From Zygnema circumcarinatum SAG 698-1b (taxonomy: Eukaryota; Plantae; Zygnematophyceae), in the NCBI GenBank assembly GCA_037447605.1, contig CM074810.1:2204880-2268879 (forward strand): DNA of 64,000 nt, given 5' to 3'. Shown piece after piece: positions 8,702 to 60,731 of this stretch; positions within the stretch are counted from its first letter, which is position 1, and each line of letters starts with the position of its first letter. The notes under the pieces are model-generated. The model was not told where the DNA came from, did no database searches, and saw nothing but the letters and a program-made list of their open reading frames with translations. Both the position numbers and the translations under genes were made by a program.

Positions 8702-10273
8702 TCATTGCGACTTTGATTGTGATTCTGATTCTGATCTTGACATGCTCCTCCAGTGCGTAATGAAGTTCAGGCGGGCGCAGGCGTGCCCTTGAAGAGCCGC
8801 CTTTTGATACCATTCCATGGCTGCCTCCCTGTCCTTTGGCAGGCCCAGGCCCCGCCCATAGCAGACCCCGAGACTGTTCTGAGCTCGCGCGTAGCCTTCA
8901 TCAGCCGCCTTCCTGTACCACTCTGCCGCCCTCTGCAGGTCTACAGACACACCTTGCCCTGTTTGAAAGCACAACCCTAAATTGTGTTGAGCGCATGCAT
9001 TCCCTTGCGCCGCCGCCTTTCTATACCAAGAGACTGCTTCTTGTAAGTCTACGGCTACACCAAGTCCGTACTGATAGCACCATCCTGTGCTGTTTTGAGC
9101 TCCTGCATGCCCCTGAACAGCGGCTTTCTTGTACCACTCCGCCGCCTCCTGCAAACTTCTTGCAACGCCCAATCCGTTACGATAGCACAACCCTAATCTG
9201 TTCTGACTCTGTGCGTCTCCTTGGTTAGCCGCCTTTCTATACCACTCCGCTGCACTTGGCAAGTTCTTCGACACGCCAACACCGTTCTCATAACACAACG
9301 CTAATCTCCTCTGGGCGCAGGCATTCCCCTGCACTGCCGCTTTATCAATAAGCTCCAAGGCTTGGTTTACATCTTGAGGCACTCCGCTCCCCTCCAAGTA
9401 ACACTCTCCCAGCAAACATTGCCCCTCCGCATCTCCTTCCGCCGCGGCCTTCTTGTAAAGGTCCACTGCTCGTTCAGCGTCTTTAGGGAAGCCCCTCCCT
9501 TTCATGAAGCATCTTCCAAGAGCGCATTGCCCTGCAGGTAGACCCTGTCCGGCCGCCTTCCTGTAATACTCAGTCGCTAGAATAATGTCTCGGTCTATTC
9601 CTCTCCCATACTCATAACAAACTCCCAACCTGCACTGAGCCTTTGCATGCCCTTTATCTGCAGCCCTAAGAAAGTGCTCTGCAGCTTTTGCAAGGTCGAC
9701 GATTGCCCCTTCGCTTCCTTCATAGCGCAACCCCAGATTGTAATCTGCCTCGATACGCTCAACTTCTCTGCTGTTCCCCGCTCTGTCAACCTTCCTATCG
9801 CACTCGTTCGCCTCTTGAACCTCCTTCCAGAGTCGACTCGTCTCCTTCACCTGGTCGACTGGTTGCAGATTCTCAGAGAGACAGAACGAGCTCTCGCATT
9901 GGCGAACAAGCACTTGCAGATCCTTGATGCTGTTCGATATCTGATTGTACAATTGCAGAGGATATGCGTCGCTGCTGCAACTGCACATCTTCGCTATTCG
10001 TATGGCCGCCATGGAGTGCAGCAGAACCTCCTGCATGGGGCACTCCTCCAAGAGAGGGGCCTGCTCCTCCGCAAGCTCCACCAGGCGCCGCACTCTCTCG
10101 CAGAGAAACTTCCCCTGCCGCACGTGCGAAGCTGCTTTCTCCCACTCCTGCTCCATCTCCACCACCAATTGGCGCGCACTAACAGCAGAACCGCCATAGC
10201 TGCCTCTCCTCTTGCTGCTTCCTTGCCGTTCCGGCTGCACTCTCCTGCTAAAAAACTGCTTGGCGGCCGCCAT
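8702..10273 (-). CDS. Intronless protein: N-terminal MLKL/MCAfunc-like four-helix bundle + 9 SEL1-like repeats
   Basis: The ORF track gives 560 aa; the probable start is MAAAK at 10273 (523 aa). It has nine ~36-aa repeats of the form AxAQxxLGxCYxxGxGVxxDxxxAxEWYRKAAxQG. The N-terminal segment LVVEMEQEWEKAASHVRQGKFLCERVRRLVE...AIRIAKMCSCS aligns by eye with the N-termini at 59218 and 64000. Confidence 0.88.
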   Translation of the reverse strand: MAAAKQFFSRRVQPERQGSSKRRGSYGGSAVSARQLVVEMEQEWEKAASHVRQGKFLCERVRRLVELAEEQAPLLEECPMQEVLLHSMAAIRIAKMCSCSSDAYPLQLYNQISNSIKDLQVLVRQCESSFCLSENLQPVDQVKETSRLWKEVQEANECDRKVDRAGNSREVERIEADYNLGLRYEGSEGAIVDLAKAAEHFLRAADKGHAKAQCRLGVCYEYGRGIDRDIILATEYYRKAAGQGLPAGQCALGRCFMKGRGFPKDAERAVDLYKKAAAEGDAEGQCLLGECYLEGSGVPQDVNQALELIDKAAVQGNACAQRRLALCYENGVGVSKNLPSAAEWYRKAANQGDAQSQNRLGLCYRNGLGVARSLQEAAEWYKKAAVQGHAGAQNSTGWCYQYGLGVAVDLQEAVSWYRKAAAQGNACAQHNLGLCFQTGQGVSVDLQRAAEWYRKAADEGYARAQNSLGVCYGRGLGLPKDREAAMEWYQKAALQGHACARLNFITHWRSMSRSESESQSKSQ

Positions 10274-27300: not shown

Positions 27301-28750
27301 TCCCTCGGCCCCCCTCTCTCCCCCTCTCTCTCCTTCCCTCTCTCCTTCCCTCTCTTCCTCCGTCCGTCCCTCCTCCCTCACTACCACCAATGGGGCCTCC
27401 CACCTGGCATGCCCCTCAAGTTCCCAATATCCCTCCCCTAAATGTTGCTCCGCCGGGAACGATTTCTTTGCATGGTGTTGCTCCGTTCAAATATACAACT
27501 TCACAGACATATGGAAAACCACCACATCAATACGATCCTTTAGCAGATAGTTTAGAGCCTAATTACCAAACTGGAGCTCCTACAGGGCCTGTTCTCCCGT
27601 CTCTACCTCAACTACCCCCTCAACCCTCTCTCCCCTCTCAACCTTCCCTACCGCCTTCCCTGCCACCTCTATTACAAGCCCCAGTTCCTTCAACAAGAAT
27701 TCAAATATATTCCAATATACATGAAGGCTACAATATCAATGACATGCAGCTGACCGGGTCTCCCTTGACGCCTCCTTCAGAACCCCCCCAAAGCCAACAC
27801 AATCTCGTCCAGGACTTAGCCGAAATAGCAGAGGGACAGGAGAAGGATACTTTGTATGGAGAAAGTGTTGGAAGGCAGGTAAAAGAGGGTAAAATAGGGG
27901 TAGTAGATTTGCCTAAAGAGTCGCACAACACCACCCGACCTTCACAGCCTCCTCTGCAGGGAGAGATAGAGGGAGAGAATGTAGGAGAGGGAGAGGCCGC
28001 AGGGGAGGGAGAGGGGGTGGGAGCAGGAGGCCTTGATGACGAGGAGGAAGGAGGGGCGGGAGAGGAGAAGGGAGAGACGAAAAAGGAGAGAGAGAGTGGG
28101 AGAAAGCCCAAGGGAGCAGGCCTTCTGAGGTCTGCTATTGCAGAGTGTGTAAAGGATGCTCTAAAGCCTGCTTGGAAAGGAGGCCAAATGAGTAAGGAGG
28201 CTTTCAAAACTATTGCAAAAAAGGCAGTAGATAAAGTGATGGGCGCTGTATCTCCCACTCAAATGCCTAAGCATCAAAGGCAGGTAGAAGCTTTCATGAC
28301 GGCGCCAAGGAAGGAGAAAATCGCAAAACTTGTGCAGGTGAGAGTGGAAGCTTACTTCTCTCCTCCCTCCCCTCCCCCCCTCCCCCCTTTTCTCTCTCTC
28401 TCTCGCTGCCTCTCTCCACCCACTCGTTCACCCCCCCCACTCTACCCCTCCTATTTCCTCCCTCGAGTCCCCTCTATCTAATGTCCGCTTCCTCCCCTTG
28501 GGCCCGTCTGAACTATCGCTCTCCCTCTCTCTTATATATCGTTCTCTGGCCTCTCCCCCATCCCTCGGTCTCTCTCCCACTCCTATTTAGAGAACGAGGT
28601 GGTACATGCATTGTTGGAACTGGTTTGGTTCTGGTTAACAGTTTCCTGTCGCTTTTGTTTTTCTTCTTCCCCCCCCCCCCCGTTTGTTGGATTAAAAAAA
28701 AAAATCGTTCTTCTCTGCAGGGCTATGTGGAGAAATTTGCGCCAAAGTGA
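24367..28750 (+). CDS. SURP/SWAP-domain, RS-rich, CCCH zinc-finger protein with C-terminal SRI-like (PHRF1/SCAF11-type) domain; probable splicing/Pol II-associated factor
   Basis: Exons 24367-25174, 25303-25572, 25700-26180, 26291-28337, 28721-28750. SURP: DPELKKNIEMLAGRVAKFGKEFEEKV...DPRFAFL...AYYEYK. RS dipeptides: SRSRSP. CCCH: CFDFSKGRCYRSDCRFLH. C-terminus: LRSAIAECVKDALKPAWKGGQMSKEAFKTIAKKAVDKV...KIAKLVQ|GYVEKF. Confidence 0.88.
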
Positions 28751-38973: not shown

Positions 38974-40590
38974 ATGGAAAGAGAGCAGAAACTACGATTT
39001 GAAGAGGAGGAATACATCAAAGCCCTTATTCCACTTCTTGGAGCATTCACATCATCAAGCCATGGAGAAGACATCCAAGATCTGATGTGCCCTATTTGTT
39101 CCAAGATTTTGGACGATCCGGTGCAAGTTGAGGGCTCTGTCGAAACGTACGATAGAAATTGCATTCAAAGGACCTTAGAAAGTGATCGCAAATCTTCTTT
39201 TCCTACTGAAAACCAAGCTCATAGTGGTGAAACCGTTGACTTTTGCCTCAAAGAAAATGTACATGCTCGGGAGCTTCTTGCTTGGTGGAAAAATGCAGTA
39301 ACGACCTCTGATTTCCACAAGGAAGAAAAGGGAGGAAGAAACGGAGCCGAAATTGATTCTAAAAGAGGCGAAGGAGGAGAAGGAGGAGGAGGATTTGAGC
39401 CATCAGTAACTCTAAAAACGGCGACAGGTTTGTTGGAAAGAGGTGTGAGTGAAGGTCATCCGAAGGCTCAGTTTGTGATGGGAGTTTCCTGCGAGTTTGG
39501 AAATGGAATCATGCAAGATGTAGTCAAGGCTTCACAGTTTGATAAAAGCATATTGAAGGAGGGGCTGCTGGCTGCTCACTGCATTGCAAACACATGCTGC
39601 AAAATCGGTCTACCAGTTCCGGCAAACTTAAGGCGGGCAATAGAGATTCATAAGAAGAAGGGCAACTATGATTTGGAGAATCTCAGAGGAGGAAAGCTGA
39701 AACATGGTGAGGAGAAGGCGAAGCAGGAGTATGTTGAAGTTGTGAATGAAAAACAAGAACAAGAGTCTGCAGGTGCAGAAAGCAAGACCAAGCTCTGTTC
39801 TGAGAATGAAATGGGTGGTTTGAAGGACCTGCAAAAGGCAGTGGAGTGGTATAGAAAAGCAGCAGAGCAGGGGCATGCAGGTGCCCAAGAAGCTTTGGGA
39901 TACTGCTATGAATATGGAAATGGGCTTCCTCATGATTTTGAGCAGGCAGTTGAGTGGTACAGGAAGGGAGCAGAGCAGGGGCAAGCAGGTTGCCAACACA
40001 AATTGGGACTTTGTTATGCGAATGGGTATGGCATACCGCAAGATTATGAACAAGCTATGAGTTGGTACATGAAGGCAGGAGAGCAAGGCTATGCAGGGTC
40101 TCAAAGAAACATTGGATACTTGTATCAGAGAGGAATTGGTTGTGTGAAGGATTTGGCCATGGCGGCAGCTTGGTTCAGAAAGGCGGCCATGCAGGGGGAT
40201 GCAGGAGGGCAATGTGCTTTGGGATACTGTTACCAGAATGGAATTGGGGTTAATAAGGACTTCACGCAAGCAGTGAGATGGTACAAAAAGGCAGCTGAAA
40301 AAGAAGATGCAAAAGCACAGAAGAATCTCGGGTTCTGCTATCAGACTGGTATGGGAGTGCGGAGAGATATGTCGGAATGTGCCAAGTGGTATCTGAAGGC
40401 AGCAGAGCAGGGCAATAGAGAAGCTCAATACTACTTGGGAAGCTGTTTTATAAGCGGCAAAGGGGTGAAGAAAAGCCGGGAGAAAGCGGTAGAGTGGTTC
40501 AGTAAGGCGGCGGAGCAGGGGCATCCAAATGCTCAAAGGCTGCTGGAAGAGATGCAGCCTTCACGTGCTTCAAGGGAAGAAACAGGTTGA
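38974..40590 (+). CDS. Intronless U-box + SEL1-repeat protein (putative E3 ligase), 538 aa
   Basis: U-box: DLMCPICSKILDDPVQVEGSVETYDRNCIQRTLE. Two degenerate, one partial and six complete SEL1 repeats (AVEWYRKAAEQGHAGAQEALGYCYEYGNG...). An in-frame TAA at 38965 fixes the start; acceptor AG at 38944-38945 suggests a 5'-UTR intron. Confidence 0.9.
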   Translation: MEREQKLRFEEEEYIKALIPLLGAFTSSSHGEDIQDLMCPICSKILDDPVQVEGSVETYDRNCIQRTLESDRKSSFPTENQAHSGETVDFCLKENVHARELLAWWKNAVTTSDFHKEEKGGRNGAEIDSKRGEGGEGGGGFEPSVTLKTATGLLERGVSEGHPKAQFVMGVSCEFGNGIMQDVVKASQFDKSILKEGLLAAHCIANTCCKIGLPVPANLRRAIEIHKKKGNYDLENLRGGKLKHGEEKAKQEYVEVVNEKQEQESAGAESKTKLCSENEMGGLKDLQKAVEWYRKAAEQGHAGAQEALGYCYEYGNGLPHDFEQAVEWYRKGAEQGQAGCQHKLGLCYANGYGIPQDYEQAMSWYMKAGEQGYAGSQRNIGYLYQRGIGCVKDLAMAAAWFRKAAMQGDAGGQCALGYCYQNGIGVNKDFTQAVRWYKKAAEKEDAKAQKNLGFCYQTGMGVRRDMSECAKWYLKAAEQGNREAQYYLGSCFISGKGVKKSREKAVEWFSKAAEQGHPNAQRLLEEMQPSRASREETG

Positions 40591-42644: not shown

Positions 42645-43527
42645 CTCTGTCTCCTACTGTCTCTCTCTGACTCCATCCTTTCTCTCTCCGCCAATTATCT
42701 CTCTTTACCACTTCCTTCTTTCCCTCTCTCTTCCCCCACCTTCTCTCCCTCTCTCTCTCTACCCCCTTTTCTACCCCCTCTCTCGCACTCTCCCAACCTC
42801 TCTCTATCTCCCCTTCTCTCTCGCTCGCCTTCCATGCTAGGCTATACAGTACGAGGCTGACAGCTGTGAGCACGCACTTCTGACTTAGTTCTATATACAT
42901 CGGTCTACCATATTTCTAAAGAGAAAAAAATTAAGAGAAACTAACTTCCTAAACCCTAACGACTCAAATCTACAAGCAACCCAAACCTGGTTTCTTCAAC
43001 CCCTTTATTTCTTTGTTCCTTTATCCTCTCTATTTCTATCCTCCTCTTCCTCCTCCTTTTTCTTCTACTTCTCCTCCTTCCACTTCTCCTTCTTCTTCGT
43101 CTTCTTCTTCTTCTTCTCCTTCTCCTTCTTCTACTTCTTCTTCTTCTCCTTCTTCTCCTCCTTCTTCTCCTTCTTCTTCTTCTCCTTCTTCTTCTTCTCC
43201 TCCTCCTCCTCCTCCTCCTCCTTCTTCTTCTTCTTCTTCTTCTTCTCCTTCTTCGTCTTCACTTTCTTCTTCTTCTTCGTCTTCTCCTCCTCCTTCTTCT
43301 CCTTCTTCTTCTTCTTCTTCTTCTTCTTCTTCTTCTTCTTCTCTTCTTCTTCTTCTCTTCTTCTTCTTCTTCTTCTTCTTCTTCTTCTTCTTCTTCTTCT
43401 TCTTCTTCTTCTTCTTCTTCTTCTTCTTCTTCTTCTTCTTCTTCTTCTTCTTCTTCTTCTTCTTCTTCTTCTTCTTCTTCTTCTTCTTCTTCTTCTTCTT
43501 CTTCTTCTTCTTCTTCTTCTTCTTCTT

Positions 43528-43559
<32 letters not shown>

Positions 43560-43841
43560 CTTCTTCTTCTTCTTCTTCTTCTTCTTCTTCTTCTTCTTCT
43601 TCTTCTTCTTCTTCTTCTTCTTCTTCTTCTTCTTCTTCTTCTTCTTCTTCTTCTTCTTCTTCTTCTTCTTCTTCTTCTTCTTCTTCTTCTTCTTCTTCTT
43701 CTTCTTCTTCTTCTTCTTCTTCTTCTTCTTCTTCTTCTTCTTCTTCTTCTTCTTCTTCTTCTTCTTCTTCTTCTTCTTCTTCTTCTTCTTCTTCTTCTTC
43801 TTCTTCTTCTTCTTCTTCTTCTTCTTCTTCTTCTTCTTCTT

Positions 43842-43872
<31 letters not shown>

Positions 43873-46429
43873 TTCTTCTTCTTCTTCTTCTTCTTCTTCT
43901 TCTTCTTCTTCTTCTTCTTCTTCTTCTTCTTCTTCTTCTTCTTCTTCTTCTTCTTCTTCTTCTTCTTCTTCTTCTTCTTCTTCTTCTTCTTCGTCTCCTC
44001 CTCCTTCTTCTTCTTCTTCTTCTCCTTCTTCTTTTTCTCCTTCTCCTCCTTCTTCTTCTTCTCCTTCTTCTTCTCCTTCTTCTTCTCCTTCCTCTTCTAC
44101 TTCTCCTTCATCTTCTTCTCTCGTTTCTTTATTCTCTGTGTATTGCAGCACCTGTCTAGGGCTGCTGCTTGTCCGGTGAAGGGCTTCTCCATAGAAGAAT
44201 TGGACCCGGAAGACAACTTCAGGAGAGGCTACACCTACTCCCATGTGGAGGATGTGGAGGATCGAACCTACCTCCTCCCTTACCTTTTGGGAGCGAGAGA
44301 TCCCTCTCTCAACAAAAGGTGCTTAACCTCATCTTCTCTCTCTTCCCACATCAATCTTTCTCTAAGACAGAATTCCTTTTTAAGAAAGAGGCTCTTAAGA
44401 AGTTTTAGGTGGAAACATTTTTTGAGAGGAGAGAAAGAGGGAGAGAGAGAAGGAAGAAAGAGAGGAGGAAAAAACTCATCCTAACATAGGCCCTTTGGTT
44501 CCCTTTGGGTTTTTTTTTTCCCCCTTTTTTTTTTTTTCCTGCTCATTTTTTTTTTTTGAAGGGGGAGGAAGATTTATCTCGATCTCGGGGGAAAATCTTT
44601 CGAGTCGAGCTTGCTGTGGTTTATGCGACTGTATCCGTTGGACTTTACGGAGTTCCATGTGTTTGAAATTAACGGACACCTGTACAATATTCCGCCCAAA
44701 CATCCCTTCAAAGATGTAGGCCCCTTCCTTCATTGGGAAACATTTTTGATAAAAAAATTGAGAATCAGTGTTTTAATCACCTTAAATGTTAAAAAAAGGA
44801 TTATCGATTACGCTATTCTTTTTTTTAAGCTTTGTTTGCTTCATTTTTAAGGAAGATTGGCACTTCAGTTTCGAAATTAAAGGGGAATTGGTTAAAGCTA
44901 TAATAAAAGAAACTAGCTCGACTGAACATGCTGCAAATTGTGAGTACTGCTTACAATTTACATTAAATAGTTTTAAAATAAAATAAAATATTTTTAAATA
45001 GTTTTAAAAAGTTAGAACTAGTTAGTTTCTAGTTATTATCATCTATCGTTTATTTATACTTTATAATTACAAGTTATTTTAATTTATGATTAATTTACTT
45101 TTATGGTTGTGCAGGAAGAGTTACTGAACATGACAGCCGGTTCAAAAAAGCGATCGGCTCAAAAACCGGTTCCTGTTCTGAACTCGCTATTGGATGCAAT
45201 AACTCTTTACAACGTCTTTGTGTCGGATCAAGATGGCACAATGACCTTCAATGATGCGGAAAGGGTGAGACATGTCCCTCTCCCTCTCCCTCTCCTCCTC
45301 CCTCTCCCTCTCCCTCTCCCTCTCCCTCTNNNNNNNNNNTCTCCCCCTCTCCCCTTCTCCCCCTCTCCCCCTCTCCCACTAACTGCTGACCCTCCCCCCT
45401 CCCGTCTCCCACTCCCCCTTTCTCTCCCCCTCCCCAATCGTGGCTTGCTATTTTCGCATGGCTTTGTAGGAAAAAGGCAGATGAGGAGAGGGTGTGAGAG
45501 CAGGAGACGGAGAGAGTGAGAGGGTGGTAAAGTGAGAGAGAGCCGGAGAAGAACGAAAGATTAGGGACCTAAAATAGAGGAGAGGGCACACAAAAGGAAT
45601 TCGAGAGGCTTTGGATTAAGAAGAGAGAGAGATGCAACGGTAGTGAGGAACGAGTGGGAGGAGAGATAGAGAGGAGGGGGAACAGCAGGAGAGGTCTATC
45701 TTCTATTGAAAGTTGAATGGGCAGACTATTGATAACATACGTCATGTTACCTTTAAGGATATATCGTGTTTAACTTCAAGGAATTCTCCAACATTAGAAC
45801 TTTCACTGAAGGAGTTGGATTGTCGTCGTTTTGTAGGAGAAAATCGACATCACGCGCTTCATCAAGGAGGAGTTGAAGGCGGGAAAAGATGATACTCTCA
45901 TTGTGAAGATGGACATAGAGGGAGCGGAATTCAGCATCCTTAACCGTATTGACTCCCCCCTCCCCCCTCCCCCCTCTCCCCCCTTCCCCCTTCCCCCACC
46001 CCCTCTTTCCAACATTAAGTTCTGGACGGAAAGTAAAGTCAAATCTGCCTTATTTCCCGCCTTCACCATCTTAAATCGAAGGACTGTCCTTTCCCACTCT
46101 TTATTGATATAACCCTTCCCCTTTTTTTTTTTTGGTTAAAATCGTTCTACCACTCATGTGCTGCTCGTATTCAACGCATACAGAACCTTCTCATGGGAGT
46201 CTATTTTTCTCAGATTCCTTTCTCTTTTTTTTTTTTTTTTTTTTTTTCAGATTGGTTGACTGATAAAGACATGGCTGAGATTGTGGACGAGCTCTTTGTG
46301 GAGGTCCACTACCACCATCCCTCCATGCAGCACTTCGGATGGGACATATTCAGCCACACGAGGGAGGAGACCACAGCGCTCTTCCAGGAACTGCGCCGCC
46401 ATGGCTTCTATGTGCATGCATGGCCATGA
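42038..46429 (+). CDS. Type II membrane FkbM-like (Methyltransf_21) SAM-dependent methyltransferase
   Basis: Exons 42038-42215, 42507-42589, 44149-44318, 44562-44715, 45115-45264, 45837-45945, 46251-46429. N-terminal TM LPLVLLGFALGVLVGFVGSLLL; motif I IYLDLGG; FHVFE; VKMDIEGAEF; VDELFVEVHY. Confidence 0.85.
43040..44120 (+). repeat. ~1.08 kb (TTC)n / GAA.TTC trinucleotide tract in intron 2 of the FkbM-like gene
   Basis: Nearly pure TTC from ~43300 to ~43990 (over 200 units, rare interruptions), with TCC-mixed flanks. Confidence 0.97.
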
Positions 46430-47577: not shown

Positions 47578-50500
47578 TTATTTACCCTTGACAGTGCATC
47601 CCTCCGGAACGCCGTACGCTCGTGCAGACCTCTTCTTCACACCTCCGTTCCTTCGCCATGGATCATTGTGAAGCTTGTAATGCAAAATCTGTGCCTCCAA
47701 CAGAAGCAGTAGTTAGGGGTCGGGGGAGGGGTAGGGGATAGGGGTAGGGATAGGGGGTAGGGATAGGGGTAGGGATAGGGGGTAGGGATAGGGGTAGGGG
47801 GGGTGGAGGAAGAGGACGAGGGAGAGGCGGAAGAGGGGGTAGGTGGGGTAGGTGGGGTAGAGGGTGTAGGGGGGGTGGTAGGTGGGGTGGATGGGGTTAG
47901 TTGGGTAGGATGGGTAGATGGGCTAGGGGGGGGGTAGTGGGTGTAGCGGGGTAGGGGAGGTAGGTTGTGGTAGGGGTAGGGAGTAAGGGGGTGGGAGTAT
48001 GGGATAGGGGCTAGGGAGAGGGGAACGAAAGCCGACTACTAGTGGTTCTTGAAGTCTGTAGGATTACTCTGTGCTCTAAGCATGGCAGGAAAAGACGAGG
48101 AGGCTGGAAATTACCTGAATCAAAGAATTAATGGCATCAACTCCTTTTAACTGCTCCACTTGTTCAGCCCACAATTGTTTGTGCCCATACCAATCCTCCT
48201 GTCTTTGAGCCTCCACTTTAAAAACGGAGTTATATGTCCACCGTTCCCAAATGGCTTGAACAGTGGACAGCATTTTACGGACTCTTTCCTCAGGAATGGC
48301 CTGCAATAACAAAAAGTAGTAATAATAGAACTATTCAGAATTTTGTTTTTTAGAATTAAGACGATGTTGGCCCTCAGACAAAACAAAAACAAGGAAGAAG
48401 TGTATGAAACTAGGAAAGAGAGGGAGAGTCGTTCATAGAGGAAAATTAAGTACAGGAATTTGAGGATTCCCGTCCCAACAATCGAAGGAGGAGGAGAGAG
48501 TGATAGAGGGGACAGAGAGGGAGAGAGGGAAGGGAGTGGGGTGAAGAACAGAGAGACGGGGAAGAGTAGAAACGGAAGGAAAACGAAGAGGAAGAGAAAA
48601 GGAAGACACGAAGCAAAGCGATACGGGGGAGGGTAAAAAACAAACGAAGGGCAGGAGGAGTTGGAGGGGGGAGAGGGGAAGAGAGAGAGGGGGGAGGGTG
48701 AGTGGGAGGCTCAGGAGGAGAGTTGGAGGGGGCTGGAGAAGGAGACGGTGAAGTTGATCAGGACGAGCGGTGAATTACCGACCTTAAGAATGGTCACCAT
48801 GTTAGGAATATCCTCTTCGGAAATGCGTACAGAGAATTCGTCAAGTTTGAACATGTTTTCATACGCCATTTGGATCCCATCTTGAATGATGACAGGAATG
48901 CAGCCATGGAGAATGCTGTCCTCCATTCTCGCACTGAAGCCATCGCCGGGAAATACTCCACAAAAGCGGGACCTCGATAACTGCACAATATCGATAACTT
49001 GCTGCTAACTTTAAAACTAGTAAGGGGGACGGGGGACGNNNNNNNNNNGGTAGGGATAGGGGGTAGGGATAGGGGTAGGGGGGGTGGAGGAAGAGGACGA
49101 GGGAGAGGCGGAAGAGGGGGTAGGTGGGGTAGGTGGGGTAGAGGGTGTAGGGGGGGTGGTAGGTGGGGTGGATGGGGTTAGTTGGGTAGGATGGGTAGAT
49201 GGGCTAGGGGGGGGGTAGTGGGTGTAGCGGGGTAGGGGAGGTAGGTTGTGGTAGGGGTAGGGAGTAAGGGGGTGGGAGTATGGGATAGGGGCTAGGGAGA
49301 GGGGAACGAAAGCCGACTACTAGTGGTTCTTGAAGTCTGTAGGATTACTCTGTGCTCTAAGCATGGCAGGAAAAGACGAGGAGGCTGGAAATTACCTGAA
49401 TCAAAGAATTAATGGCATCAACTCCTTTTAACTGCTCCACTTGTTCAGCCCACAATTGTTTGTGCCCATACCAATCCTCCTGTCTTTGAGCCTCCACTTT
49501 AAAAACGGAGTTATATGTCCACCGTTCCCAAATGGCTTGAACAGTGGACAGCATTTTACGGACTCTTTCCTCAGGAATGGCCTGCAATAACAAAAAGTAG
49601 TAATAATAGAACTATTCAGAATTTTGTTTTTTAGAATTAAGACGATGTTGGCCCTCAGACAAAACAAAAACAAGGAAGAAGTGTATGAAACTAGGAAAGA
49701 GAGGGAGAGTCGTTCATAGAGGAAAATTAAGTACAGGAATTTGAGGATTCCCGTCCCAACAATCGAAGGAGGAGGAGAGAGTGATAGAGGGGACAGAGAG
49801 GGAGAGAGGGAAGGGAGTGGGGTGAAGAACAGAGAGACGGGGAAGAGTAGAAACGGAAGGAAAACGAAGAGGAAGAGAAAAGGAAGACACGAAGCAAAGC
49901 GATACGGGGGAGGGTAAAAAACAAACGAAGGGCAGGAGGAGTTGGAGGGGGGAGAGGGGAAGAGAGAGAGGGGGGAGGGTGAGTGGGAGGCTCAGGAGGA
50001 GAGTTGGAGGGGGCTGGAGAAGGAGACGGTGAAGTTGATCAGGACGAGCGGTGAATTACCGACCTTAAGAATGGTCACCATGTTAGGAATATCCTCTTCG
50101 GAAATGCGTACAGAGAATTCGTCAAGTTTGAACATGTTTTCATACGCCATTTGGATCCCATCTTGAATGATGACAGGAATGCAGCCATGGAGAATGCTGT
50201 CCTCCATTCTCGCACTGAAGCCATCGCCGGGAAATACTCCACAAAAGCGGGACCTCGATAACTGCACAATATCGATAACTTGCTGCTAACTTTAAAACTA
50301 GTAAGGGGACGGGGGGAGGGGGAGGGGAGGGGGGAGGGAGAGGGGAAGGAGGGAGGGGAGGGGGGAGGGAGAGGGGAAGGAGGGAGGGGGGAGGGAGAGG
50401 GGGAAGGAGGGAGGGAGGGGAGGGGGGAGGGGGGAGGGGGGAGGGGGAGGGAGAGGGGGAGGGAGGGGAGGGGGAGGGGGAGTGGGGAGGGGGAGGGGGA

Positions 50501-51449
50501 GGGGGAGGGGGAGGGGAGGGGGAGGGGGAGGGGGAGGGGAGGGAGGGAGGGCTTAATAATGGGAATAGATACACTCAACATAAACTAATTCTCAGTTAAA
50601 AGTTTCAATAATCGAAAATCTATCATAGTTAATATTATGTCAGCAAAATTGCATACCTTAAAGCAAAACAGGAGGCTGGCGAACGCATACCTACAATAAC
50701 TATAATATTGTTACTGTCAATCTCTTAATTTAGATTTTCCTTTACCTCTCCTCGATAGTTTGGGACGTGACCGCTTGTCACAATCACTCCCTCTTCATGA
50801 AATTCCCCCAATTTCTCTTCAATATTTGGACTTGAACCAAATAATTTCGCCACCTTTTGCCGGATTCCCATACTATATCTGTCAGCCAAAAAAGGCCAAC
50901 AAAAATTTTCCTCACCAAAAGGAAGCACAAAAAGAAAAAGAAGAAAACCTGCAGCGTTCTTACACCGAAATATGAATCAGGGAAAAATACAGAAGCTTAG
51001 CATAGTTTTTCAAAGCATGAGCATGTAGTCAGTGCTCAGAGCTCGACTGAAAGGCCTAAAAAAGTAAATTTTAAGTCTGGCTTGAGCTGTAAAATGTAGA
51101 TGCCAAAACAGTCTTTTTAGGGTTTTTAGGGTTTTTAGGGGTTTTAGGGTTAATAAAGGGTTAAGTTAATAAAAGGCAGAAAGAAAAGAAAAGTTATCAC
51201 AGCATTACCCCTCCTCACGCCTTCCATTAAGATATCGAGGTCCGAGATTTCCTCTAAAAAAGAAAAGAATCGGCCGTTCTTCAAAACGTCTGCCATGCAA
51301 CGCCATGCAAGAATTAAATTATATCATTAAAGGTATGCTGAAATGGGGATTTTAGCAACCAAATGAATTTTCACTTAGGAGAGAGAAAAGGTGCGTCAGG
51401 AAGGTGGAAGAACGTATACTGTATCCTCCTGATTGGTCAAGCATGGCTG

Positions 51450-51480
<31 letters not shown>

Positions 51481-54400
51481 TCTCTCTCCGGCTGCAAGAT
51501 AGGAGAGAGCAGCCATGGTTGACCAATTAGGACGAAGGGGAATTGTGTCCTTCCATCCGTACTTTCTTTCAAGGTGAAAGAGAGGAGGAGGTGAGGAGAG
51601 GACGAGATGAGAAGAGGAGAGGTGAAGAGAGAAGAAGATGGGAGGGACAAGGAGAGGGAGAGGGTTGAAAGGAGGACGGAGGTGAGGAAAGGAGAAAAAG
51701 AGAGAAGGGAGAGAAGCAGGATCGGCCAAGTATTAAGATCCTTCGAGAATACCTCACCCAAAGTTTCGCAACTAAATGGTCTGCATTTGGCTCCTTCATT
51801 GCAGGAAGAACTATGTCTTTTGTGGGATCAAAGCATGGATGGCCTCCATGAATTTCTTCAGGAATTCGGCTCCATGAATCAGCTCCATAAGCTGTGGTAG
51901 AATAGTTGTGGGTTGTCATTGTATTGCCCCAAGGAGTGAGCATTATACTGTTCCATATTACTTTTGGAGCTGCACAAGCTCCTTCATCCCAAGGAAAAGT
52001 CTGCAGCCGATTTGAGGTAGTAATTGATTCCCAAAATTAATTCACTATATTTTCCTACCTTCCTATCCACCTCATGTTGGGAAAGCTTCTCAAAACAAGC
52101 GTAGTTGGATCAATATAAATATATATACAGCGACTATAGTGACTATATATATAGAGACAAGTATAGTAGTATAAAGTTCTTGAATATGGAGCAAACCCAT
52201 TACATCAATTAACAAAAGTGAATGAGAGGAAAATAGGGACTCAAAGAAGCGGCTTTTGAGTGTTTTCTCGATGCATTTGCAGCGCAGATTTGTGTGTTCA
52301 GGGTCTGAATTGATTTCTTACCCAAATATGATCCCGGCCTTCAGTACGATTCCAATACGGATAATGATTCCGGATGTACTCATAGGCTCGAATGGCAAAT
52401 GAAGCTACAAAGAAGCTACGGCTACCTTTGAAATCTTCCTGCATTCATAGGAGGGCTAATTCATCATTCAATTCTCCTTACACCTTGTAGAAGAAATACT
52501 AAAAATGTCATATATTTATCCCTCGGAATCCCAAAGGAAGTGTGTGAGGAATGCAAAAAAGCTATGGAGGAAATGTCCCTACAAGAGGATGCTCATGTGT
52601 TCAAAAAATTGATAGACCAATGTTGTAAAACAGATACGCAGTTTGACTGCATGCAGTGCTGAATCCTGGAAAGGGGGTCAGAGAGAGGGGAGAGAGGGGA
52701 GAGAGAGGGAGAGGGGAGAGAGGGGAGAGAGGGGAGAGTGGGGAGAGAGGGGATAGAGGGGAGAGGAGGGAGAGAGGGAAGAGAGGGGAGAGAGGGGAGA
52801 GAAGAAAAAAAGAGAGAGCGGGGAGAGTGGGGAGAGGGGGGAGAGGCGCAGAGAGGGGAGAGAGGGAGAGAGGGGAGAGAGGGGAGAGAGGCAGAGAGGG
52901 GAGAGAGGGGAGAGAGGGAGAGAGGCAAAGAGGGAAGAGAGGGAGAGATGGGAGAGAGGCAGAGAGGGAGAGAGAGAGAGAGAGAGGCAGAACCTGCATG
53001 TCCATTCGTGGAGAATCGTCTGCCCTTGCTTGTATGCAGCCCGTGAAGACGGGCACATAGAAAAAGTCAGCCTCCTCTGCATTGCTAGTGCGATGAGGAC
53101 TCGCTAAAAGCCCCTCCAATAGTGCAGCCTGCATACAAATTATATGAAAGATAAAAAAATATAGCATCAGTCAGCAATCTCCATAATCAAAAAGTGATCT
53201 TCGAATCGCAACCTCCCTCTCCTCTCCTGCCCTCCCTCCCTCCCCCCTCTCTCCTCCCTCCCCTCCCTCCCCTCCCTCCCTCCTCTCCTCCCTCCCCTTC
53301 CTCCCCTCNNNNNNNNNNTCCCTCCCTCCCTCCCTCCCTCCTCTCTCACTTCCCTCAGCTTCCGTGAGTTCATCTGCACTTGCCAGTTTGAAATAAAAAC
53401 TACAATACTTTAAATCTTTCTTTCTTCGCTAATTCCCCAATTTTGGGTTCCAGCAGCATCACAAAATCCACGAAGTTTCGATATTTTTCGAAGGGCGATA
53501 GAAGGAGACCCTAATGCCATTTTTTTTTAAGGCCTTTAATTTCAACATCAGAAGAAGTTTTCTGGAAATTGATTCCCGAAAAAAGGTGCAAAGAGTTGAG
53601 GAAAAAAACCTCCATTCCGTACAACCAGCCTGGATTAAATTCAGTTGCATTTGCAGAATCATAGGACCAAGGCATGCAATAGACTCTCCATTTCCGACCC
53701 TGCAGAAAAAAACAGCAACAGCAATAACTAAAAGTTATTTTAAGTAAACAGCATACATGCAAACCAGGGTGTTTAGGGTTTTTAATTTGTTAAATTCTGT
53801 TCTTAATCTGTCTTAAATCAAAATCATCTTCAACCACTTATGATGGAATTGAACATATTCTTCTCGTCATCCCAGCGAGTGCTTGCAGCTTCTCTTCTCT
53901 CGCTCCTCTCTCTCTCCTCTTTCTCTCTCTCGCTCACTCTCTCTCTCTCTCTCTCTCTCTCTGATGGTGAGGGATTCTAGCCTGTCACCTGAAGATGGTG
54001 AAAGTTGAACTCCCCTGGGAGGTCATAAACATATATAAGAGGCCTCCTACGTGTTACTTCAAATTCTTTTTTCTTTTCTTTTCCTTTCATAACTGCCATT
54101 GAAGATGAACTTCGTCCCGATAATATCCACGGAGAGGTCCAAGCATTCAACTTTGTCCTACTTGAAGGAATGCTGCAATCAATTCCAAACCATCCCTCTC
54201 TGCACTGTCTCCAAGCAACCAATCACCCCCCACTTCTTTTCTGTTAAAAAAGAAAGGTATGCGGAAAAAGTAAAACGAGAAACCCCTAAAGCCTTAGCCC
54301 TAATGCTACCAACCCTAAAATTCGATTATCTTAGAAGCTCAACTTCCTGATTCAGTTTGTCTGATTCAGACAGCCAAAAAGTATGTCAAAAATTCCGTTA

Positions 54401-54975
54401 TTTTCCCTACCTCACAGTATCCCATGTGGCAATCTCCGTGGTTATTGCAGCCACCTAAACAATATGAGCGTGTTGGAATTTCGCAAAATTTTCCTGTCTG
54501 GCCATCATAGTTACAGAAACAGTAAGATCGAGCCACGGGCTGCTTAGAAGGGTCGGCCATGCACCATCCGGGACTTGCGGAGTCGTTTGCATACATCTTG
54601 TCAAGATCAAGTTGAAACGTATTTCTGCAAGACATCTCACCAGCCAAAAAAAAACAAAAAAACACAAACACAAACAGAAAGCAAGAGCTTTGAACAAATG
54701 AACTGCAGAAATGCAGTGAATGAATATTGATATTTGAATCGATTCATTGAATCAGTTACCATCTAAACTGAATCAGTTTTTCTCCCCCACTTGCAGAAAA
54801 GCCTAGCCTTGTGGATAGTTCGAGTAGTTCAGTGTCCTTCTTCAAAAAAGAAAAAACTCCACTCGATAAATCATTTGAAAATGTCTGGGAACTTATTCTT
54901 GTTAGCTGAACCTGTTGTTTTCATATCAAACTAAAGTGTAAAATGCCTTTCTCTCTCTCTCTTCCTCTCTCCCTC

Positions 54976-55031
<56 letters not shown>

Positions 55032-55323
55032 GAAAACCCAAAGTAGACAGCCGATGGGTTAATTAGCTCACGTTTCTCGATTAAAACCGCATGGCTCCAC
55101 AGCAGGTCGATTTGGATATGGAGACTTGGGCCCACAAAAGCATTGGGCAGTCCGTTTGTCGCAGAATCCGGCACACATTGATACAATCCACATTCCTTCC
55201 AGTTCTCGATTACAAGGATACTCATCAAGTTCGCCACAGTCAGCTCCTGCTTTGTGAAGAAGAAAATGGATGAAAAAAGAGAGAATGAAATTTAGAGGCT
55301 TGTATTGTATTGGCTTGGCTTGT

Positions 55324-55380
<57 letters not shown>

Positions 55381-56170
55381 GGAGCATGTTAGGAGCAGAC
55401 CAGCCTTGCAACAGGAACATGTATATTATGCATGTTATGAATGGATCCACATAAATGCATGCAAATTCCTCGCAATTTGAATTTCAGCCCTACCGTAATA
55501 GCCATGTCTGCAGCGGCACTCCCCCAGCTCATAGTTGCAAACGCCATTGCCATTGCAGCCTCCAGGGCACTCCTTCGTTGCCACAAACTGCGATAAAAAT
55601 GGCGATACATTGAATTGAAGGTGCAAGGTGTTTAGGGTTTTAAAGGGATCTCTTAAGTAAACCGAAAAATATGTATCTACTGTTTTCCAATGTCTCCGCC
55701 ACCATGAAGCCAAAAGACTCAAAACTTGAAGGTGAAAAATATAGCAGATAGCATACGAGCTTCAAACTGACCTCCTTGATCGCGACTTGCTCAGAAACAG
55801 CTCCACATTCTCTGAACCATTCTGCAACTTCGTCTTTCCAAGGAGCCATGGACCAAACACTCGCTTCACTTTCCGCAGCATTCAGGATCTCCTCCTTTGT
55901 GGTATCTCCATCGCCATCCTCCCCAGCTTCAGGCTCAATCTCCTCTGTGCTTGCAGCAGGGCCCTCCTGAAGAAGAAGGGCGGCTGCATCCTTCCCTTGC
56001 CCTGCCTGCAAAGGAACTGAAGGCTGCTGGAAATCCAGAATACTGAAGATGACGTACACGGCGAGGAGGAAAGCCATCATGCCCAGCTGAATGGCGCCAT
56101 GGCGGCCATGGCTGGATCTTGGAGGAGCTTCTGAGGAGGGAGGAGCTCCTTCTCTCTTGGAGGAAACCAT
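47578..56170 (-). CDS. EGF-like-domain exostosin family glycosyltransferase (GT47; At3g57630-like)
   Basis: Start MVSSKREG at 56170, TM IQLGMMAFLLAVYVIFSIL, EGF-like CPGGCNGNGVCNYELGECRCRHG. Also RRPLIYVYDLPGEFN, HRTSNAEEADFFYVPV, HPCFDPTKDIVLPA, YSMGIRQKVAKLFGSSPN, FCGVFPGDGFSARMEDSILHGCIPVIIQDG, and last exon ILHYKLHNDPWRR...K* ending at 47578. Not all internal exon borders were resolved. Confidence 0.92.
47748..50310. repeat. Near-identical 1281-bp tandem duplication across a 10-N gap (probable assembly artefact)
   Basis: 47748-49018 is repeated at 49029-~50310; the ORF-track peptides are identical at an offset of exactly 1281 (48076/49357, 48711/49992). Both junctions are G-rich repeats. 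Confidence 0.9.
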
Positions 56171-56454
56171 TCTTGCTCCCAATTTTTTTTTTATATATAT
56201 ATTTATAAGAAAATCATACAATGCTTTGCTTGTTGAGTTACAGGGTTTCCGTAGCAGTCAGATTTCCAGATTTAGGGTTTGAAAATTTATCCTTCCAAGC
56301 CATAGGCTCCAGCTTCAGGATTTTGGTTTTTCAGCAGAAACCTGGAAATGGAACTCTGAAACCAGCAACTAGAAACTGGAAACTGGAGGTACGGAGAGTG
56401 CCCGTCCGTACATTATTACGCTTACAAAAACGACAACTGAACTGATCGGCTAAA

Positions 56455-56635
56455 TCATGATTGGCAACAATTGATTGGTTGATACAGATTTTTCAAATTC
56501 GATCTTAAACACTCCATTGGTCGATACAGATTGAAAATCCGATTTTTTGCAACATTGATTGGTTGGTATGGATTCTACAAATCCGATCTTAGCAACATTT
56601 GATTGGCTTATGCAGATTTTACAAATCCCAAATTC
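56455..56635. repeat. Imperfect ~43-bp minisatellite containing ATTGG (CCAAT box), about 4 units, upstream of the exostosin gene
   Basis: Unit approximates GCAACATTGATTGGTTGATACAGATTTTACAAATCCGATCTTA. Confidence 0.7.
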
Positions 56636-57445
56636 CGAGAAAAGTAAATCAGATACGATTTGAAGTCTCTCAAGATTCTATTAGTTGAGGTCGAAACTGT
56701 ACGAATTCCAAAACTTTTGTCGCCGCGCTCTCGCCGCTTCTGATTGGTGCAACCTACAGAACCTGACGTCATATATACTTTATGACGTCATCCATGGCCT
56801 GCCGGCTTGCGTTCGACCTGGCAGGCAGCGTCGCTTCGCAGTTTTTTCATCGTCCACCAATACAGTCGATATATCTCTATATATCTCGAAAATCTCGATA
56901 TACTACACGTGGCAGGCTGGCTCCCTCTCTTGATACATGTCAAACTAAAAATTCGTCAGTAAAACTGAGAAGAAATTAGCCATTAGAACGGGAACCGGAA
57001 CGAGTGGACATGGAAATCTCCCACGCAGAAGAGTGTATCTACAAAACCTATGTATGATACGACCAAGAATTTTGCGTTCGATTCTTGCAAAATACATATT
57101 GTGGGTAACTCAGGACGACCCCCTAGGATTGGCTGCTGGTAAAAATCCTTTTTTTTTTTTGAAAGTATGGAGAATACAAGAACTGGCATTGATCTCACGA
57201 TGGCAAAGGACTTAAGAACAAAACGAAAAATGCCAAACTGTCGAGATATCTTAAATCACCCTAATATATAAACACATAATGATACTAGAATTCCTTGTGA
57301 CTTTATCAAGGTGTGCCCTTTCTGGGCCTTCACATTGAGCCCCCTTCAGGAATGCCCCGCCGAACTCGTCCTCACTTTTCTTCGCACAGGCACTGAACAC
57401 ACTCAGCGGGTGACAACTTTTGATTTTCAGCGAAATTCAACTCTT

Positions 57446-59218
57446 TTACCAAATATACTTGTGCTCTGAGTTTAGTGCTCGGTCTTCGTATCCTTTGTGA
57501 ATAAGTTTGTACTTCGATTTGTCACATCCTTGATTCCTTGCCATTTTATACAGTTCGATGGCCTTTTGTTCGTTCCTCTCTGTGCCAATCCCCTCGTCGT
57601 AACACCTCCCCAGATGAAACTGACCGTTCGGATCTCCTAAGTAAGCCGCCTTCTTAAAAAAACACTTGGCCTTCTCCACGTCAGAATGCACGAATGATCG
57701 ATCCTCAAAAATGTGTCCCAATTGCACCAGGGCTGAGGCACACTTCTGCTCCGCTGCTAATTCATACCATTTCGTAGCCTTCTCCAAGTCAGAGTAAACA
57801 CCCTCTCCCAATTCATAACACAGTCCGAGGTTAAACTGACCACATGGATCTCCTTTCTCCGCTGCCATCCTGAAAAGCTCCACAGCTTTATCAAAATTGC
57901 GGTCCTCCTTGTAACGTAATCCTGATGCACACAGCGCTTGAGGAGAGTCCTTATAAGCAGCCGCTTTGTACCTGTGCGCAATATTTCCGTTACTTGATTC
58001 CGCATAAATTGGGGCACGATGGTAAGCTGCCGCTTTATCCCCATCGACGCTGCTGTTTTGGAACAGAAAACTTTCTTGTTTTAAGTATGTAGGACCCTTC
58101 TCCCGGCCCTCATCATACTGCCCTATTTGGAGGTTTTGGAGCAGAGAACCTAATTCTGCTTGGGTTGACTCTGTCGGAAGTTTCTCCCGGCTCACATTGT
58201 ACTGACTTGAAGTGCCGCTTCCCGGATTGGGACTCTGCAGGCTTGAGGAAAATTCTCCGTACCTCCTGCCGCTTCCTCGATTTGCTTCGTAGAAGTTGAA
58301 AGCATCAATTTGTTTAATCATTGAACGCAAATTTTTTTTTTCTTTTTCGTTTGATTCCGCCCTCAGCTCATCTTCCTTCAACTCTCTTTTGAATTCTTCC
58401 TTCTGATGAGTCAAGGCAAGGAGGGGAATCACAAGTCAGCATTGTCCGAAATGCATAAGTAAATGGATAGAGGCAAAAACTCAGGGTCCACGGGCTCGGG
58501 TTCTGATAAGTTCTTTTCGCATTCTAAGACAATTTCTTAACTGGGAGACGGTTCAAATCTCTCCTCAATATCCTTCGTCTCGGCAGACAAGTCAATCACA
58601 GACAGCGATATGCATAAACTTTCAAAGCCATCCCACAAACAAACAAATGCCATCACAGCGCTTCTCCAAGCCCGCCCCGGAACGCACCTCAGCATCTGGA
58701 TCGGCAAATCGATGAGTCAATAACACGCGTTGAAGAAAAGGTCCAATATATTCCGGATTGTTTAGCGCCGCTGCACCGAACCATCGAACGTCGCTGTCCT
58801 CCTCGTCGTCATCCTCCGTTAGTAGATCGGTGTTCGGACTCGGAGAGGGTGGTTGACCGCCTCTCTCCGTTTCTCTCACCGTCAGAAATATCATCAGGAC
58901 GGTGTTCAAGTCATCCTGTATTTGGATAAGGTTTGCTGAAATCTCCGTCGCAAACATGGCTCGGTACAGAGCGCTCTTATTGCATTTCTCTGCAACAGCA
59001 ATTGCCCTCTTCATGATAGACCGAAACTGGTCTATTGCAAGTCCTTCTATGTCATTCCCTTGGGAACATCTATTCTCAATCGCTTTGTACACGATATTCA
59101 CGAAATCACTCAGCTTCTTGCCATTCTTTCTATGCGACTTCACGTTCTCCCACACAGCCATCACTTCCTTCACAAGAGACCCGACTTCTTTCAGAAGAGC
59201 GAAAGACGCAAAACCCAT
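57446..59218 (-). CDS. MLKL/MCAfunc-like four-helix-bundle + helical linker + SEL1-repeat protein (~495 aa)
   Basis: Exon 1 59218-58688 (MGFASFALLKEVGSLVKEVMAVWENVKSHRKNGKKLSDFVNIVYKAIE...FRSIMKRAIAVAEKCNKSALYRAMFATEISANLIQIQDDLNTVL...DPDAE|). Exon 2 58402-57446 has about 4 SEL1 repeats (CGQFNLGLCYELGEGVYSDLEKATKWYELAAEQ). A possible extra 3' exon starts at 57392 after a short intron (TG|GTAAAA). Confidence 0.85.
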
Positions 59219-60159
59219 GGCGGCCGGTAAGTCTCCCAAGGATTTTCCCTTTTTCCTTCTCCTTCTTTTTCTCCTTCGCCTTCTCCTTCTTTATCTCCTC
59301 CCTCTCGCTCACCCTCTACCTCTCCCCCTCCCTCTCCCGCCTCCAACCCGTACGGACATTATAGCCGTCTTTTTGTACAGGTACGAAAAGTACCATTAGT
59401 ACGGACTTACTTTTGTCGTCAGCGGAAAAAATTGAAGTCAACTCGTAAGGACAGCAAAAACATGTCTAATAAGTAGGGGACGACTTGTCCTTTTGTCCTT
59501 TTTCTGAATGTAGTGTACGTTTTCGCCGGGCAGCAAGAAAAAGGATGTTTTTGGCGAAAAATGCTGTTTCATACTTTTCAGAATAGATACAGACCTTTTA
59601 TCGTCGAATGTATGGATGGTGATTTGAAATGTACCAAGCGCGCGCGTCTACAAGGTATAAGGGCGCAACACGTGGAGCGACATGATTGGTCGCGGCAACA
59701 TATGACGTGACAAGTATGTTTGGGACCTTGACGTGACGAAACGAGACGCGAAAAAAGTGGAGTCCGCGGACGGCAGTCGGAAATGGCGGGAATTGAAACT
59801 GACAGAAAAAGTTAGGGCACATAACGTAGCGTGTTTCAGGAAAAATCTGTCAGTTTCAATTCCCGCCATTTCCGACTGCCGTCCGCGGACTCCACTTTTT
59901 TCGCGTCTCGTTTCGTCACGTCAAGGTCCCAAACATACTTGTCACGTCATATGTTGCCGCGACCAATCATGTCGCTCCACGTGTTGCGCCCTTATACCTT
60001 GTAGACGCGCGCGCTTCGTACATTTCAAATCACCATCCGTACATCCGACGACAAAAGGTCTGTATCTATTCTGAAAAGTATGAAACAGCATTTTTCACCA
60101 AAAAAAACCTTTTTTTTGTTGCCCGGCGAAAACGTACACTACATTCAGAAAAAGGACAC

Positions 60160-60731
60160 TAGGGCGTGACAAAATGTTACGAATATCGAGTTTTTAGTAT
60201 TACGAGAATCGAGGTTACTAAGTACTAAAAATCATCGCGCCCCCGAACCTAAACCGAACCGAACGGAAGTCAACTGTGCTAAGTCAACGGGTCAACGTTG
60301 CGAAGATTGACCCGTGGGGTTTACTGAAATTGCATTTCTTCGCACGATTTTGTTCGCACCCAAAAGAGACGCCGAAATGGACGTGCGAAGAAAATACTGG
60401 CGAAAATCGCGGCAACGTGACGTCATGGTTGTTTTCCCGGCTTCCCGCCCTCGCCCGCGCCCGCCCGTGACGCGCAACACGACACAACGACAGGCGGTCT
60501 CTCCGCGCCGCGCCGGCGCTGTTTCTAAGTCTGAGGGCCCCGCGCGAGGGCGAAGTTGCGAAGACGGCGTTTGGAGAAGTGCGAAGACGGCGATCGCGGA
60601 GTGCGAACAGGACCGCGCCGCGAGTGCGAAAAACTACGCTCGAGAATTTTAGTTTTACTGACGTTGACTCGAAATGTTACGAATATCGAGTTTTTAGTAT
60701 TACGAGAATTTTTTAAGTCTGACACGCCCTA
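60160..60731. mobile_element. hAT-like MITE with TAGGGCGTG termini, nested in the foldback element
   Basis: TAGGGCGTG at 60160 and CACGCCCTA ending at 60731; internal 38-bp direct repeat at 60172-60209 and 60672-60709. No TSD found. Confidence 0.6.

Follow-up and report, generated by a model that had tools for sequence, protein, structure and literature searches.

Four-helix bundles of one clan are found in killer proteins (MLKL, RPW8/CC-R and HeLo) and in proteins that are not killers, namely in the N-terminal domains of PUB proteins, in ARO proteins (DUF7792) and in MCA/CNR13 (MCAfunc). In land plants, such a bundle often stands in front of an alpha-solenoid without a nucleotide-binding hub; PUB proteins are composed of bundle, U-box and ARM repeats, and ARO proteins of bundle and ARM repeats. 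Here we describe a gene of the streptophyte alga Zygnema circumcarinatum SAG 698-1b located at 57446-59218 on the minus strand of a 64,000-nucleotide stretch of contig CM074810.1, which is called the window in the following and to which all positions refer. The two-exon gene (59218-58688 and 58402-57446) codes for 495 amino acids. It is expressed as a spliced transcript, and its product joins a predicted four-helix bundle, probably a distant relative of the clan, to four Sel1 repeats. An earlier reading of this DNA, made from the letters alone (below, the sequence-only reading), had seen in the protein a candidate receptor-executor of cell death.

Layouts that share one or the other half of this protein have been described. 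RPW8/HR proteins are non-NLR proteins in which a bundle is followed by repeats (PMC6684095). The CC-R domain of the helper NLR NRG1.1 was found to resemble MLKL and ZAR1 (bioRxiv 10.1101/2021.02.25.431980). Sel1 repeats are fused to nucleotide-binding (NB) domains in Klebsormidium (PMC7145615), and "MLKL-family" Sel1 proteins are reported from Glomeromycotina in a source that does not state the matching domain (PMC8778642). Full-text literature searches found no description of a bundle-Sel1 fusion in streptophytes.

The N-terminal four-helix bundle

The N-terminal domain (residues 1-118; 58865-59218, minus strand) was modelled on the basis of a three-sequence alignment, A1, which combines it with the N-domain of a paralogue at 8702-10273 and with the bundle fragment of a neighbouring pseudogene. 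Residues W23, E24, G33, K34, L36, V40 and A72 are invariant in A1. AlphaFold2 run on A1 with residues 1-121 returned a four-helix bundle (predicted local distance difference test, pLDDT, 82.4; predicted template modelling score, pTM, 0.76) with helices at residues 2-24, 27-52, 59-79 and 83-118. A single-sequence AlphaFold model of all 177 residues of exon 1 was poor (pLDDT 44), and fold searches started from it were meaningless. The prediction that residues 1-118 fold as a four-helix bundle is well supported.

Foldseek, using 3Di letters together with sequence against 350,542 PDB chains, gave the executioner domain of human MLKL as best match (6zvo; E 0.035, probability 1.00, template modelling (TM) score 0.58, 22% identity). 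Further MLKL matches were 6zz1, 6ux8, 2msv and mouse 4btf, with TM scores of about 0.6 and 18-22% identity. The CC-R domain of Arabidopsis NRG1.1 (7l7v) also belonged to the top group, with TM scores of 0.60-0.71 and a root-mean-square deviation of about 3 Å, and matches to the coiled-coil (CC) domain of Rx were weaker (9-10% identity). The leading MLKL and NRG1.1 matches had a probability of 1.00 and TM scores of 0.58-0.65. Twelve of the top 17 rows were occupied by MLKL, NRG1 CC-R and Rx CC, at E-values of 0.035-0.3 that are not significant. Comparison by geometry alone resulted in Z-scores of 10.8 for mouse MLKL (4btf), 9.7-10.2 for the N-terminal domain of human MLKL (6ux8, 6zz1, 6zvo), 9.8-11.1 for NRG1.1 CC-R, 10.4-11.0 for Rx CC and 8.6 for AtMLKL3 (6ka4). 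Designed bundles reached 11.7-12.7 and the four-helix bundle of Cbl about 10. The sequence-only reading had proposed an MLKL/MCAfunc/HeLo-type bundle. Both the four-helix model and the best Foldseek matches, MLKL and NRG1.1, agree with this proposal, but the geometry-only scores, being no higher than those of designed bundles, do not single it out.

Language-model (ESM) features of the N-domain were nearest to the MCAfunc, DUF7792, MLKL_N and RPW8 clusters, with 204 of 256 features in common and a score of 0.95, which is reached by about one in 100 shuffled proteins according to the tool's own calibration. Eight of the ten best matches lay within one clan. The N-domain of the paralogue at 8702-10273, which is 26% identical over 88 residues (pairwise E 0.002), had its nearest features in the PUB10_N, DUF7792, MCAfunc and RPW8 clusters at a score of 0.86, which is to be read as a lead only.

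Searches at the level of sequence were less productive. A phmmer search of exon 1 against 1.84 billion representative proteins returned three matches and no credible relative; the three were judged spurious, being repetitive proteins (mTERF-like repeats, low-complexity) aligned piecemeal. No relative of the N-domain was found in word-indexed searches with residues 1-120 of exon 1 and with a profile of A1, or in a metagenome scan, and neither the single sequence nor the profile retrieved anything relevant for it in sequence searches of the PDB. The best Pfam match of the N-domain was DUF7792, which aligned in register (residues 62-103 against profile positions 63-104) and stayed below threshold (E 0.059; 14 bits versus a cut-off of 27). 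For neither exon did Pfam report MLKL_N, RPW8 or MCAfunc at E≤10, and no profile match to PF22215, PF05659, PF19584 or PF25055 exceeded the curated cut-off, so that the kinship to MCAfunc, MLKL_N, RPW8 or HeLo drawn by eye in the sequence-only reading found no counterpart at profile level. The peptide strings quoted there are all present in the protein. They include the H-[RK]-K-N-x-x-x-L turn at residues 29-36, and elsewhere in the window a regular-expression search for H-[RK]-K-N matched nothing. Neither Pfam nor the language model gave a signal for the pseudogene's bundle fragment, and the paralogue N-domains gave no Pfam matches.

Taken together, we consider the N-domain to be probably a highly divergent member of the MLKL_N/RPW8/MCAfunc/DUF7792 (UND) superfamily. 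An unrelated generic four-helix bundle, serving for instance in dimerisation or cargo binding, with a merely convergent likeness to MLKL and RPW8, would be consistent with the lack of a significant hidden Markov model (HMM) match, with the Foldseek E-values of 0.035-0.15 for MLKL and NRG1, and with geometry-only Z-scores of 10-11 for these two proteins that do not exceed those of the designed bundles. A shape search of the Atlas with the good model, which gave generic bundles only and was uninformative, fits this explanation as well. It appears very unlikely, however, in view of the share of the clan among the top Foldseek rows and the 17-22% identity of the MLKL and NRG1 rows, compared with mostly 5-12% for unrelated bundles found by geometry alone. 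Moreover, it does not readily account for the language-model result, or for the landing of the distant paralogue in the same clan.

Gene model, transcription and domain layout

Between 86 and 91% of the sampled words of the locus were present in six public runs from two studies. The kind of these runs is not on record; they were taken as RNA because the spliced form was in 25- to 120-fold excess and the assemblies comprised 34-42 million letters. Assembled contigs of four runs were aligned to positions 56500-60200. In X1 and X2 (study P1) and in X4 (study P2), one contig of 1073 letters each joins 58402 to 58688 and omits exactly the 285 letters of a phase 0 intron (58403-58687), whose ends, CT..AC on the plus strand, correspond to GT..AG on the gene strand. 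Depths of the spliced contigs were 109, 101 and 538 in X1, X2 and X4, versus 4.1, 2.3 and 4.5 for contigs containing the intron. No base differences between contigs and genome were detected within the coding sequence. The gene is transcribed and correctly spliced, and the 58688/58402 junction of the sequence-only reading was recovered exactly in three runs from two studies.

Exon 1 (58688-59218) contributes 177 codons, ends at 58688 with GAG, directly before the GT of the intron, and is contained without differences in the spliced contigs of the three runs. Exon 2 (57446-58402) contributes 318 codons and the TAA stop at 57446. The start ATG at 59218-59216 lies in the context GCCGCCATGG. The open reading frame is bounded by the stop at 57446 and by an in-frame TAA at 59293-59291 upstream of the ATG, and no ATG was found in the leader region 59219-59340. 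The GA-rich 5' leader (59219-59292, minus strand) is covered by contigs reaching 59283-59292 and by short pieces to 59338, indicating transcription at least to 59292 and perhaps to 59338. As the contigs break within this leader, the 5' end is placed only to about 59283-59338. The 3' untranslated region (56701-57445) has an uncertain end, since the X1 contig stops at 56701 and the X2 and X4 contigs enter the next gene.

The encoded protein is taken to be soluble; its sequence shows neither a signal peptide nor a membrane-spanning segment. An N-myristoylation site at Gly2 was considered and dropped; Phe at position 3 breaks the usual pattern. The order of domains was as the sequence-only reading had written it, a helical domain followed by an acidic Ser/Pro linker, a second helical stretch and four Sel1 repeats. 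The linker (residues 119-143; 58790-58864) contains nine D/E and one K/R in 25 residues (isoelectric point 4.05) and had a pLDDT below 50 in the single-sequence model. The second helical stretch (residues 144-177; 58688-58789) has two short predicted helices, at residues 139-153 and 155-168, which were seen only in the low-confidence single-sequence model. Residues 139-170, with their WFGAAA stretch, were examined as a decayed Sel1 repeat and rejected, as a family-specific Sel1 HMM run without filters gave no match.

Exon 2 begins with a highly charged helical, coiled-coil-like segment (residues 178-216; 58286-58402), assigned by composition, which is kept at 58% identity in the neighbouring pseudogene (tblastn of exon 2 residues 4-74 against 63770-63558). 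It is followed by a low-complexity and probably disordered region without Pfam match (residues 217-334; 57932-58285). The four Sel1 repeats (residues 335-470; 57524-57931) were delimited by Pfam, by the family-specific HMM, which was built from 17 Sel1 units of two other family genes in the window, and by alignment with the neighbouring tandem copy. PF08238 matched four stretches of exon 2 (E 7.9e-27; 93.2 bits versus a cut-off of 30.7), and the family HMM placed the repeats at residues 335-363, 364-399, 415-435 (weak) and 436-470. Repeat 1 is four residues shorter than in the neighbouring copy, and repeat 3 is degenerate and lacks the usual glycines. A word-indexed search with exon 2 returned generic Sel1 proteins only, at 25-44% identity, among them kinase-Sel1 proteins of about 553 residues; the protein itself was not among the matches, and the N-termini of these Sel1 proteins are unrelated to the N-terminus described here. 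The absence of NB-ARC, NACHT and kinase domains, also claimed in the sequence-only reading, held: at E≤10, Pfam reported no kinase (Pkinase, PK_Tyr_Ser-Thr), NB-ARC, NACHT, U-box, PLAC8 or ARM match in either exon.

Several features of the flanking DNA were recorded. The low-complexity GA-rich tract of the leader region (59243-59341) recurs near 31340, 34301, 38770, 43078-44104 and 45275 with 71-89% identity. One X4 contig (181 letters, depth 155) agrees with 59140-59292 without a mismatch, but its remaining 28 letters, beyond 59292, do not occur in the window. An upstream coding exon as the source of this extension was set aside, there being no AG acceptor at that place; the contig is treated as a probable chimera. 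About 270 nucleotides upstream of the ATG lies a foldback (59489-60163) with arms of 318 nucleotides (59489-59806 and 59846-60163) that are 97% complementary and enclose a loop of 39 nucleotides. The RNA contigs that overlap it differ widely in depth, which makes it probable that this is a repeated element resembling a miniature inverted-repeat transposable element. The neighbouring gene downstream, also on the minus strand (approx. 49992-56221), has several exons and codes for an exostosin/GT47-like glycosyltransferase that carries a membrane anchor at its N-terminus and cysteine motifs of the EGF-like type; proline/serine-rich and GA-repeat introns or inserts lie within it. RNA contigs continue into it from the 3' untranslated region of the Sel1 gene. 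Further away, two identical translated stretches at 48379 and 49660, approx. 1.3 kb apart, indicate a local direct duplication, and an open reading frame of 630 residues at 26589-28481 (plus strand) begins with a ZAP-like CCCH zinc finger (Pfam E 6.5e-5, below cut-off).

Gene family, selection and proposed function

The window contains four members of the gene family. In addition to the gene at 57446-59218, these are an intronless paralogue of 523 residues with a related bundle and nine Sel1 repeats (8702-10273, minus strand; Pfam Sel1 E 1.2e-88), a gene of 538 residues with a different head, in which a U-box precedes seven Sel1 repeats (38974-40590, plus strand; Pfam U-box E 1.8e-5, Sel1 E 8.1e-74), and a tandem paralogue on the minus strand that extends from 62713 to 64000 and beyond the window. 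The latter is a pseudogene, its frame being broken by premature TGA codons and by one or more frameshifts. It shares 73-75% DNA identity with the gene at 57446-59218 throughout the Sel1 part and the flank on the 3' side. Helices 1-3 of its bundle lead immediately into the charged coil; helix 4, the acidic linker, the second helical stretch and the intron are missing, owing either to a deletion or to a different module junction. We regard the gene at 57446-59218 as part of an alga-specific family that expands by tandem duplication and swaps different heads on Sel1 arrays; among the intact members it is the smallest.

The ratio of nonsynonymous to synonymous substitution rates (dN/dS, Nei-Gojobori) between the gene and the neighbouring pseudogene was 1.01 over 219 codons; the Sel1 array taken by itself gave 1.33, and the disordered part 0.70. 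As one partner is a pseudogene, these values show only a lack of visible purifying selection on the repeats, and a ratio near 1 is compatible with drift as well as with diversifying change. The gene might accordingly be seen as a young by-product of module shuffling that is open but has little or no function and is drifting towards a pseudogene. The ratio of about 1.0 against the adjacent pseudogene, the short repeat 1 and the loss of the Sel1 glycines in repeat 3 fit such a fate, as does the fact that protein, profile and metagenome searches found no relative of the N-domain outside this genome. We nevertheless hold it to be unlikely. In approx. 230 aligned codons, the pseudogene has accumulated two premature in-frame stops and one or more frameshifts, whereas all 495 codons of the gene are free of disabling lesions. 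This argues for selection that keeps its frame open, because the sister copy gathered stops, at least one frameshift and the loss of helix 4, linker and intron while this gene gathered none. Furthermore, two studies show its RNA at a high steady-state level and with clean splicing, and its start context is strong.

Our preferred reading, for and against which we see about equal chances, is that the protein would act as an adaptor or regulator and not as a stand-alone killer. Binding of a protein partner would fall to the Sel1 solenoid, while the bundle would serve for self-association or for docking, either at a membrane or with further members of the family. The protein may in this way take part in the ubiquitin or kinase signalling of the family as a relative without U-box, comparable to the position of ARO proteins beside PUB ligases in land plants.

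Several points weigh against this proposal. Two of the four Sel1 repeats are degenerate, and no purifying selection is visible on the repeats, neither over all compared codons (about 1.0) nor in the array (1.33). The analogy to PUB and ARO proteins has its support only in the annotations of the language-model clusters. As to the N-domain, no significant sequence or profile match ties it to any family, its AlphaFold model is based on three sequences only, and geometry alone ranks designed bundles, IncA and the Cbl bundle level with MLKL and NRG1 (Z 10-12.7).

The receptor-executor switch put forward in the sequence-only reading would make a different use of the same parts. On sensing a ligand, or a host target that has been modified, the Sel1 repeats would free the bundle, which would form an oligomer that permeabilises a membrane or acts as a cation channel. 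In its favour, Foldseek ranked the executioner domains of MLKL and NRG1.1 highest, and MLKL_N and RPW8 are among the language-model neighbours. Most members of the nearest language-model clusters, which are of the MCAfunc, DUF7792 and PUB type, are not known killers, however. A basic cluster of five K/R and one His at the turn between helices 1 and 2 (residues 27-35) would suit a membrane-active bundle, but helix 4 contains a single basic residue, in contrast to the lipid-binding lysines and arginines of NRG1.1 (mutated in 7l7v). Birth-and-death evolution of the family, with tandem copies, pseudogenes and head swapping, would be in line with such a switch. The dN/dS of 1.33 in the Sel1 array is what a fast-evolving recognition surface might show, but a ratio near 1 against a pseudogene is equally expected from neutral drift, and four repeats of which two are degenerate make a small sensor. 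An immune role of a bundle with repeats outside NLRs is exemplified by the RPW8/HR proteins (PMC6684095). Overall, we judge the executor function to be unlikely.

Distinctly improbable in our view is a wider scenario in which streptophyte algae possess a hub-less innate immunity. Shuffling of exons or modules would have linked one fast-evolving Sel1 recognition module to different outputs, and the gene described here would represent the direct sensor-to-pore form. If this were true, a bundle that is restrained by its own Sel1 solenoid and freed on ligand binding would be a simpler precursor of, or an alternative to, the resistosomes of CC-type NLRs.

Comparison with known systems

Of the known layouts, those of the PUB and ARO proteins and of the RPW8/HR proteins come nearest. 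In PUB and ARO proteins, too, the N-terminus is a bundle, probably of one clan with that described here; it precedes an alpha-helical solenoid, and a nucleotide-binding domain is absent. Moreover, the clusters nearest to this gene and its paralogue are annotated DUF7792, PUB10_N and PUB2_N, and the algal family includes a U-box member. In contrast to PUB and ARO proteins, the algal solenoid consists of Sel1 instead of ARM repeats, the U-box is absent from the protein described here, and its bundle has diverged too far to be recognised by Pfam. A likeness to MCA1/2 and CNR13-like proteins is given by the nearest language-model clusters, annotated "cell number regulator 13-like" and MCAfunc (0.93-0.95), and by the turn at residues 29-36. 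However, Pfam did not report MCAfunc at E≤10, and the algal protein has neither PLAC8 nor a membrane segment.

With MLKL, both of animals and of the plant MLKL1-3/Pm13 type, the protein shares its modelled N-terminal four-helix bundle, for which MLKL is the best Foldseek match in the PDB. Unlike MLKL, it has no pseudokinase or kinase domain; the segment after the bundle is an acidic linker and not a demonstrated brace, and activation by phosphorylation is not implied. The RPW8/HR proteins and the CC-R domains of the helper NLRs NRG1.1 and ADR1 have a bundle of probably the same kind (7l7v, Z 9.8-11.1). The repeats of the HR proteins are short sequence repeats, however, and not a Sel1 solenoid, the RNLs carry NB-ARC and LRR domains, and the algal protein does not share the basic helix 4 of NRG1.1.

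The fusions of Sel1 arrays to NB domains in Klebsormidium and to kinases in Glomeromycotina and bacteria resemble the algal gene in that the array is the C-terminal module of a signalling or immune-type protein. They are headed by NB-ARC or kinase domains, whereas none was found among them with a four-helix-bundle head. The match behind the "MLKL-family" label of the Glomeromycotina proteins is presumably to their kinase domain.

The sequence-only reading knew of no characterised plant system with this architecture. The layout is less unusual than was assumed there, as a bundle precedes an alpha-solenoid in PUB and ARO proteins and repeats in RPW8/HR proteins, in each case without a nucleotide-binding hub. 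The combination of bundle and alpha-solenoid without a hub is already known; new here is the use of Sel1 repeats as the solenoid joined to a bundle of the putative MLKL/RPW8/UND type. Should the protein be only an adaptor of a family of PUB/ARO-like ligases, it would amount to a modest note on domain shuffling. It also raises the questions whether this type of bundle has membrane activity outside NLRs and MLKLs and whether Sel1 arrays serve as recognition modules in the plant lineage. How such bundles first came to be coupled to sensors is still an open problem in immune evolution, and an intact, well-expressed bundle-Sel1 gene with a U-box relative on the same solenoid provides a compact and clonable test case.

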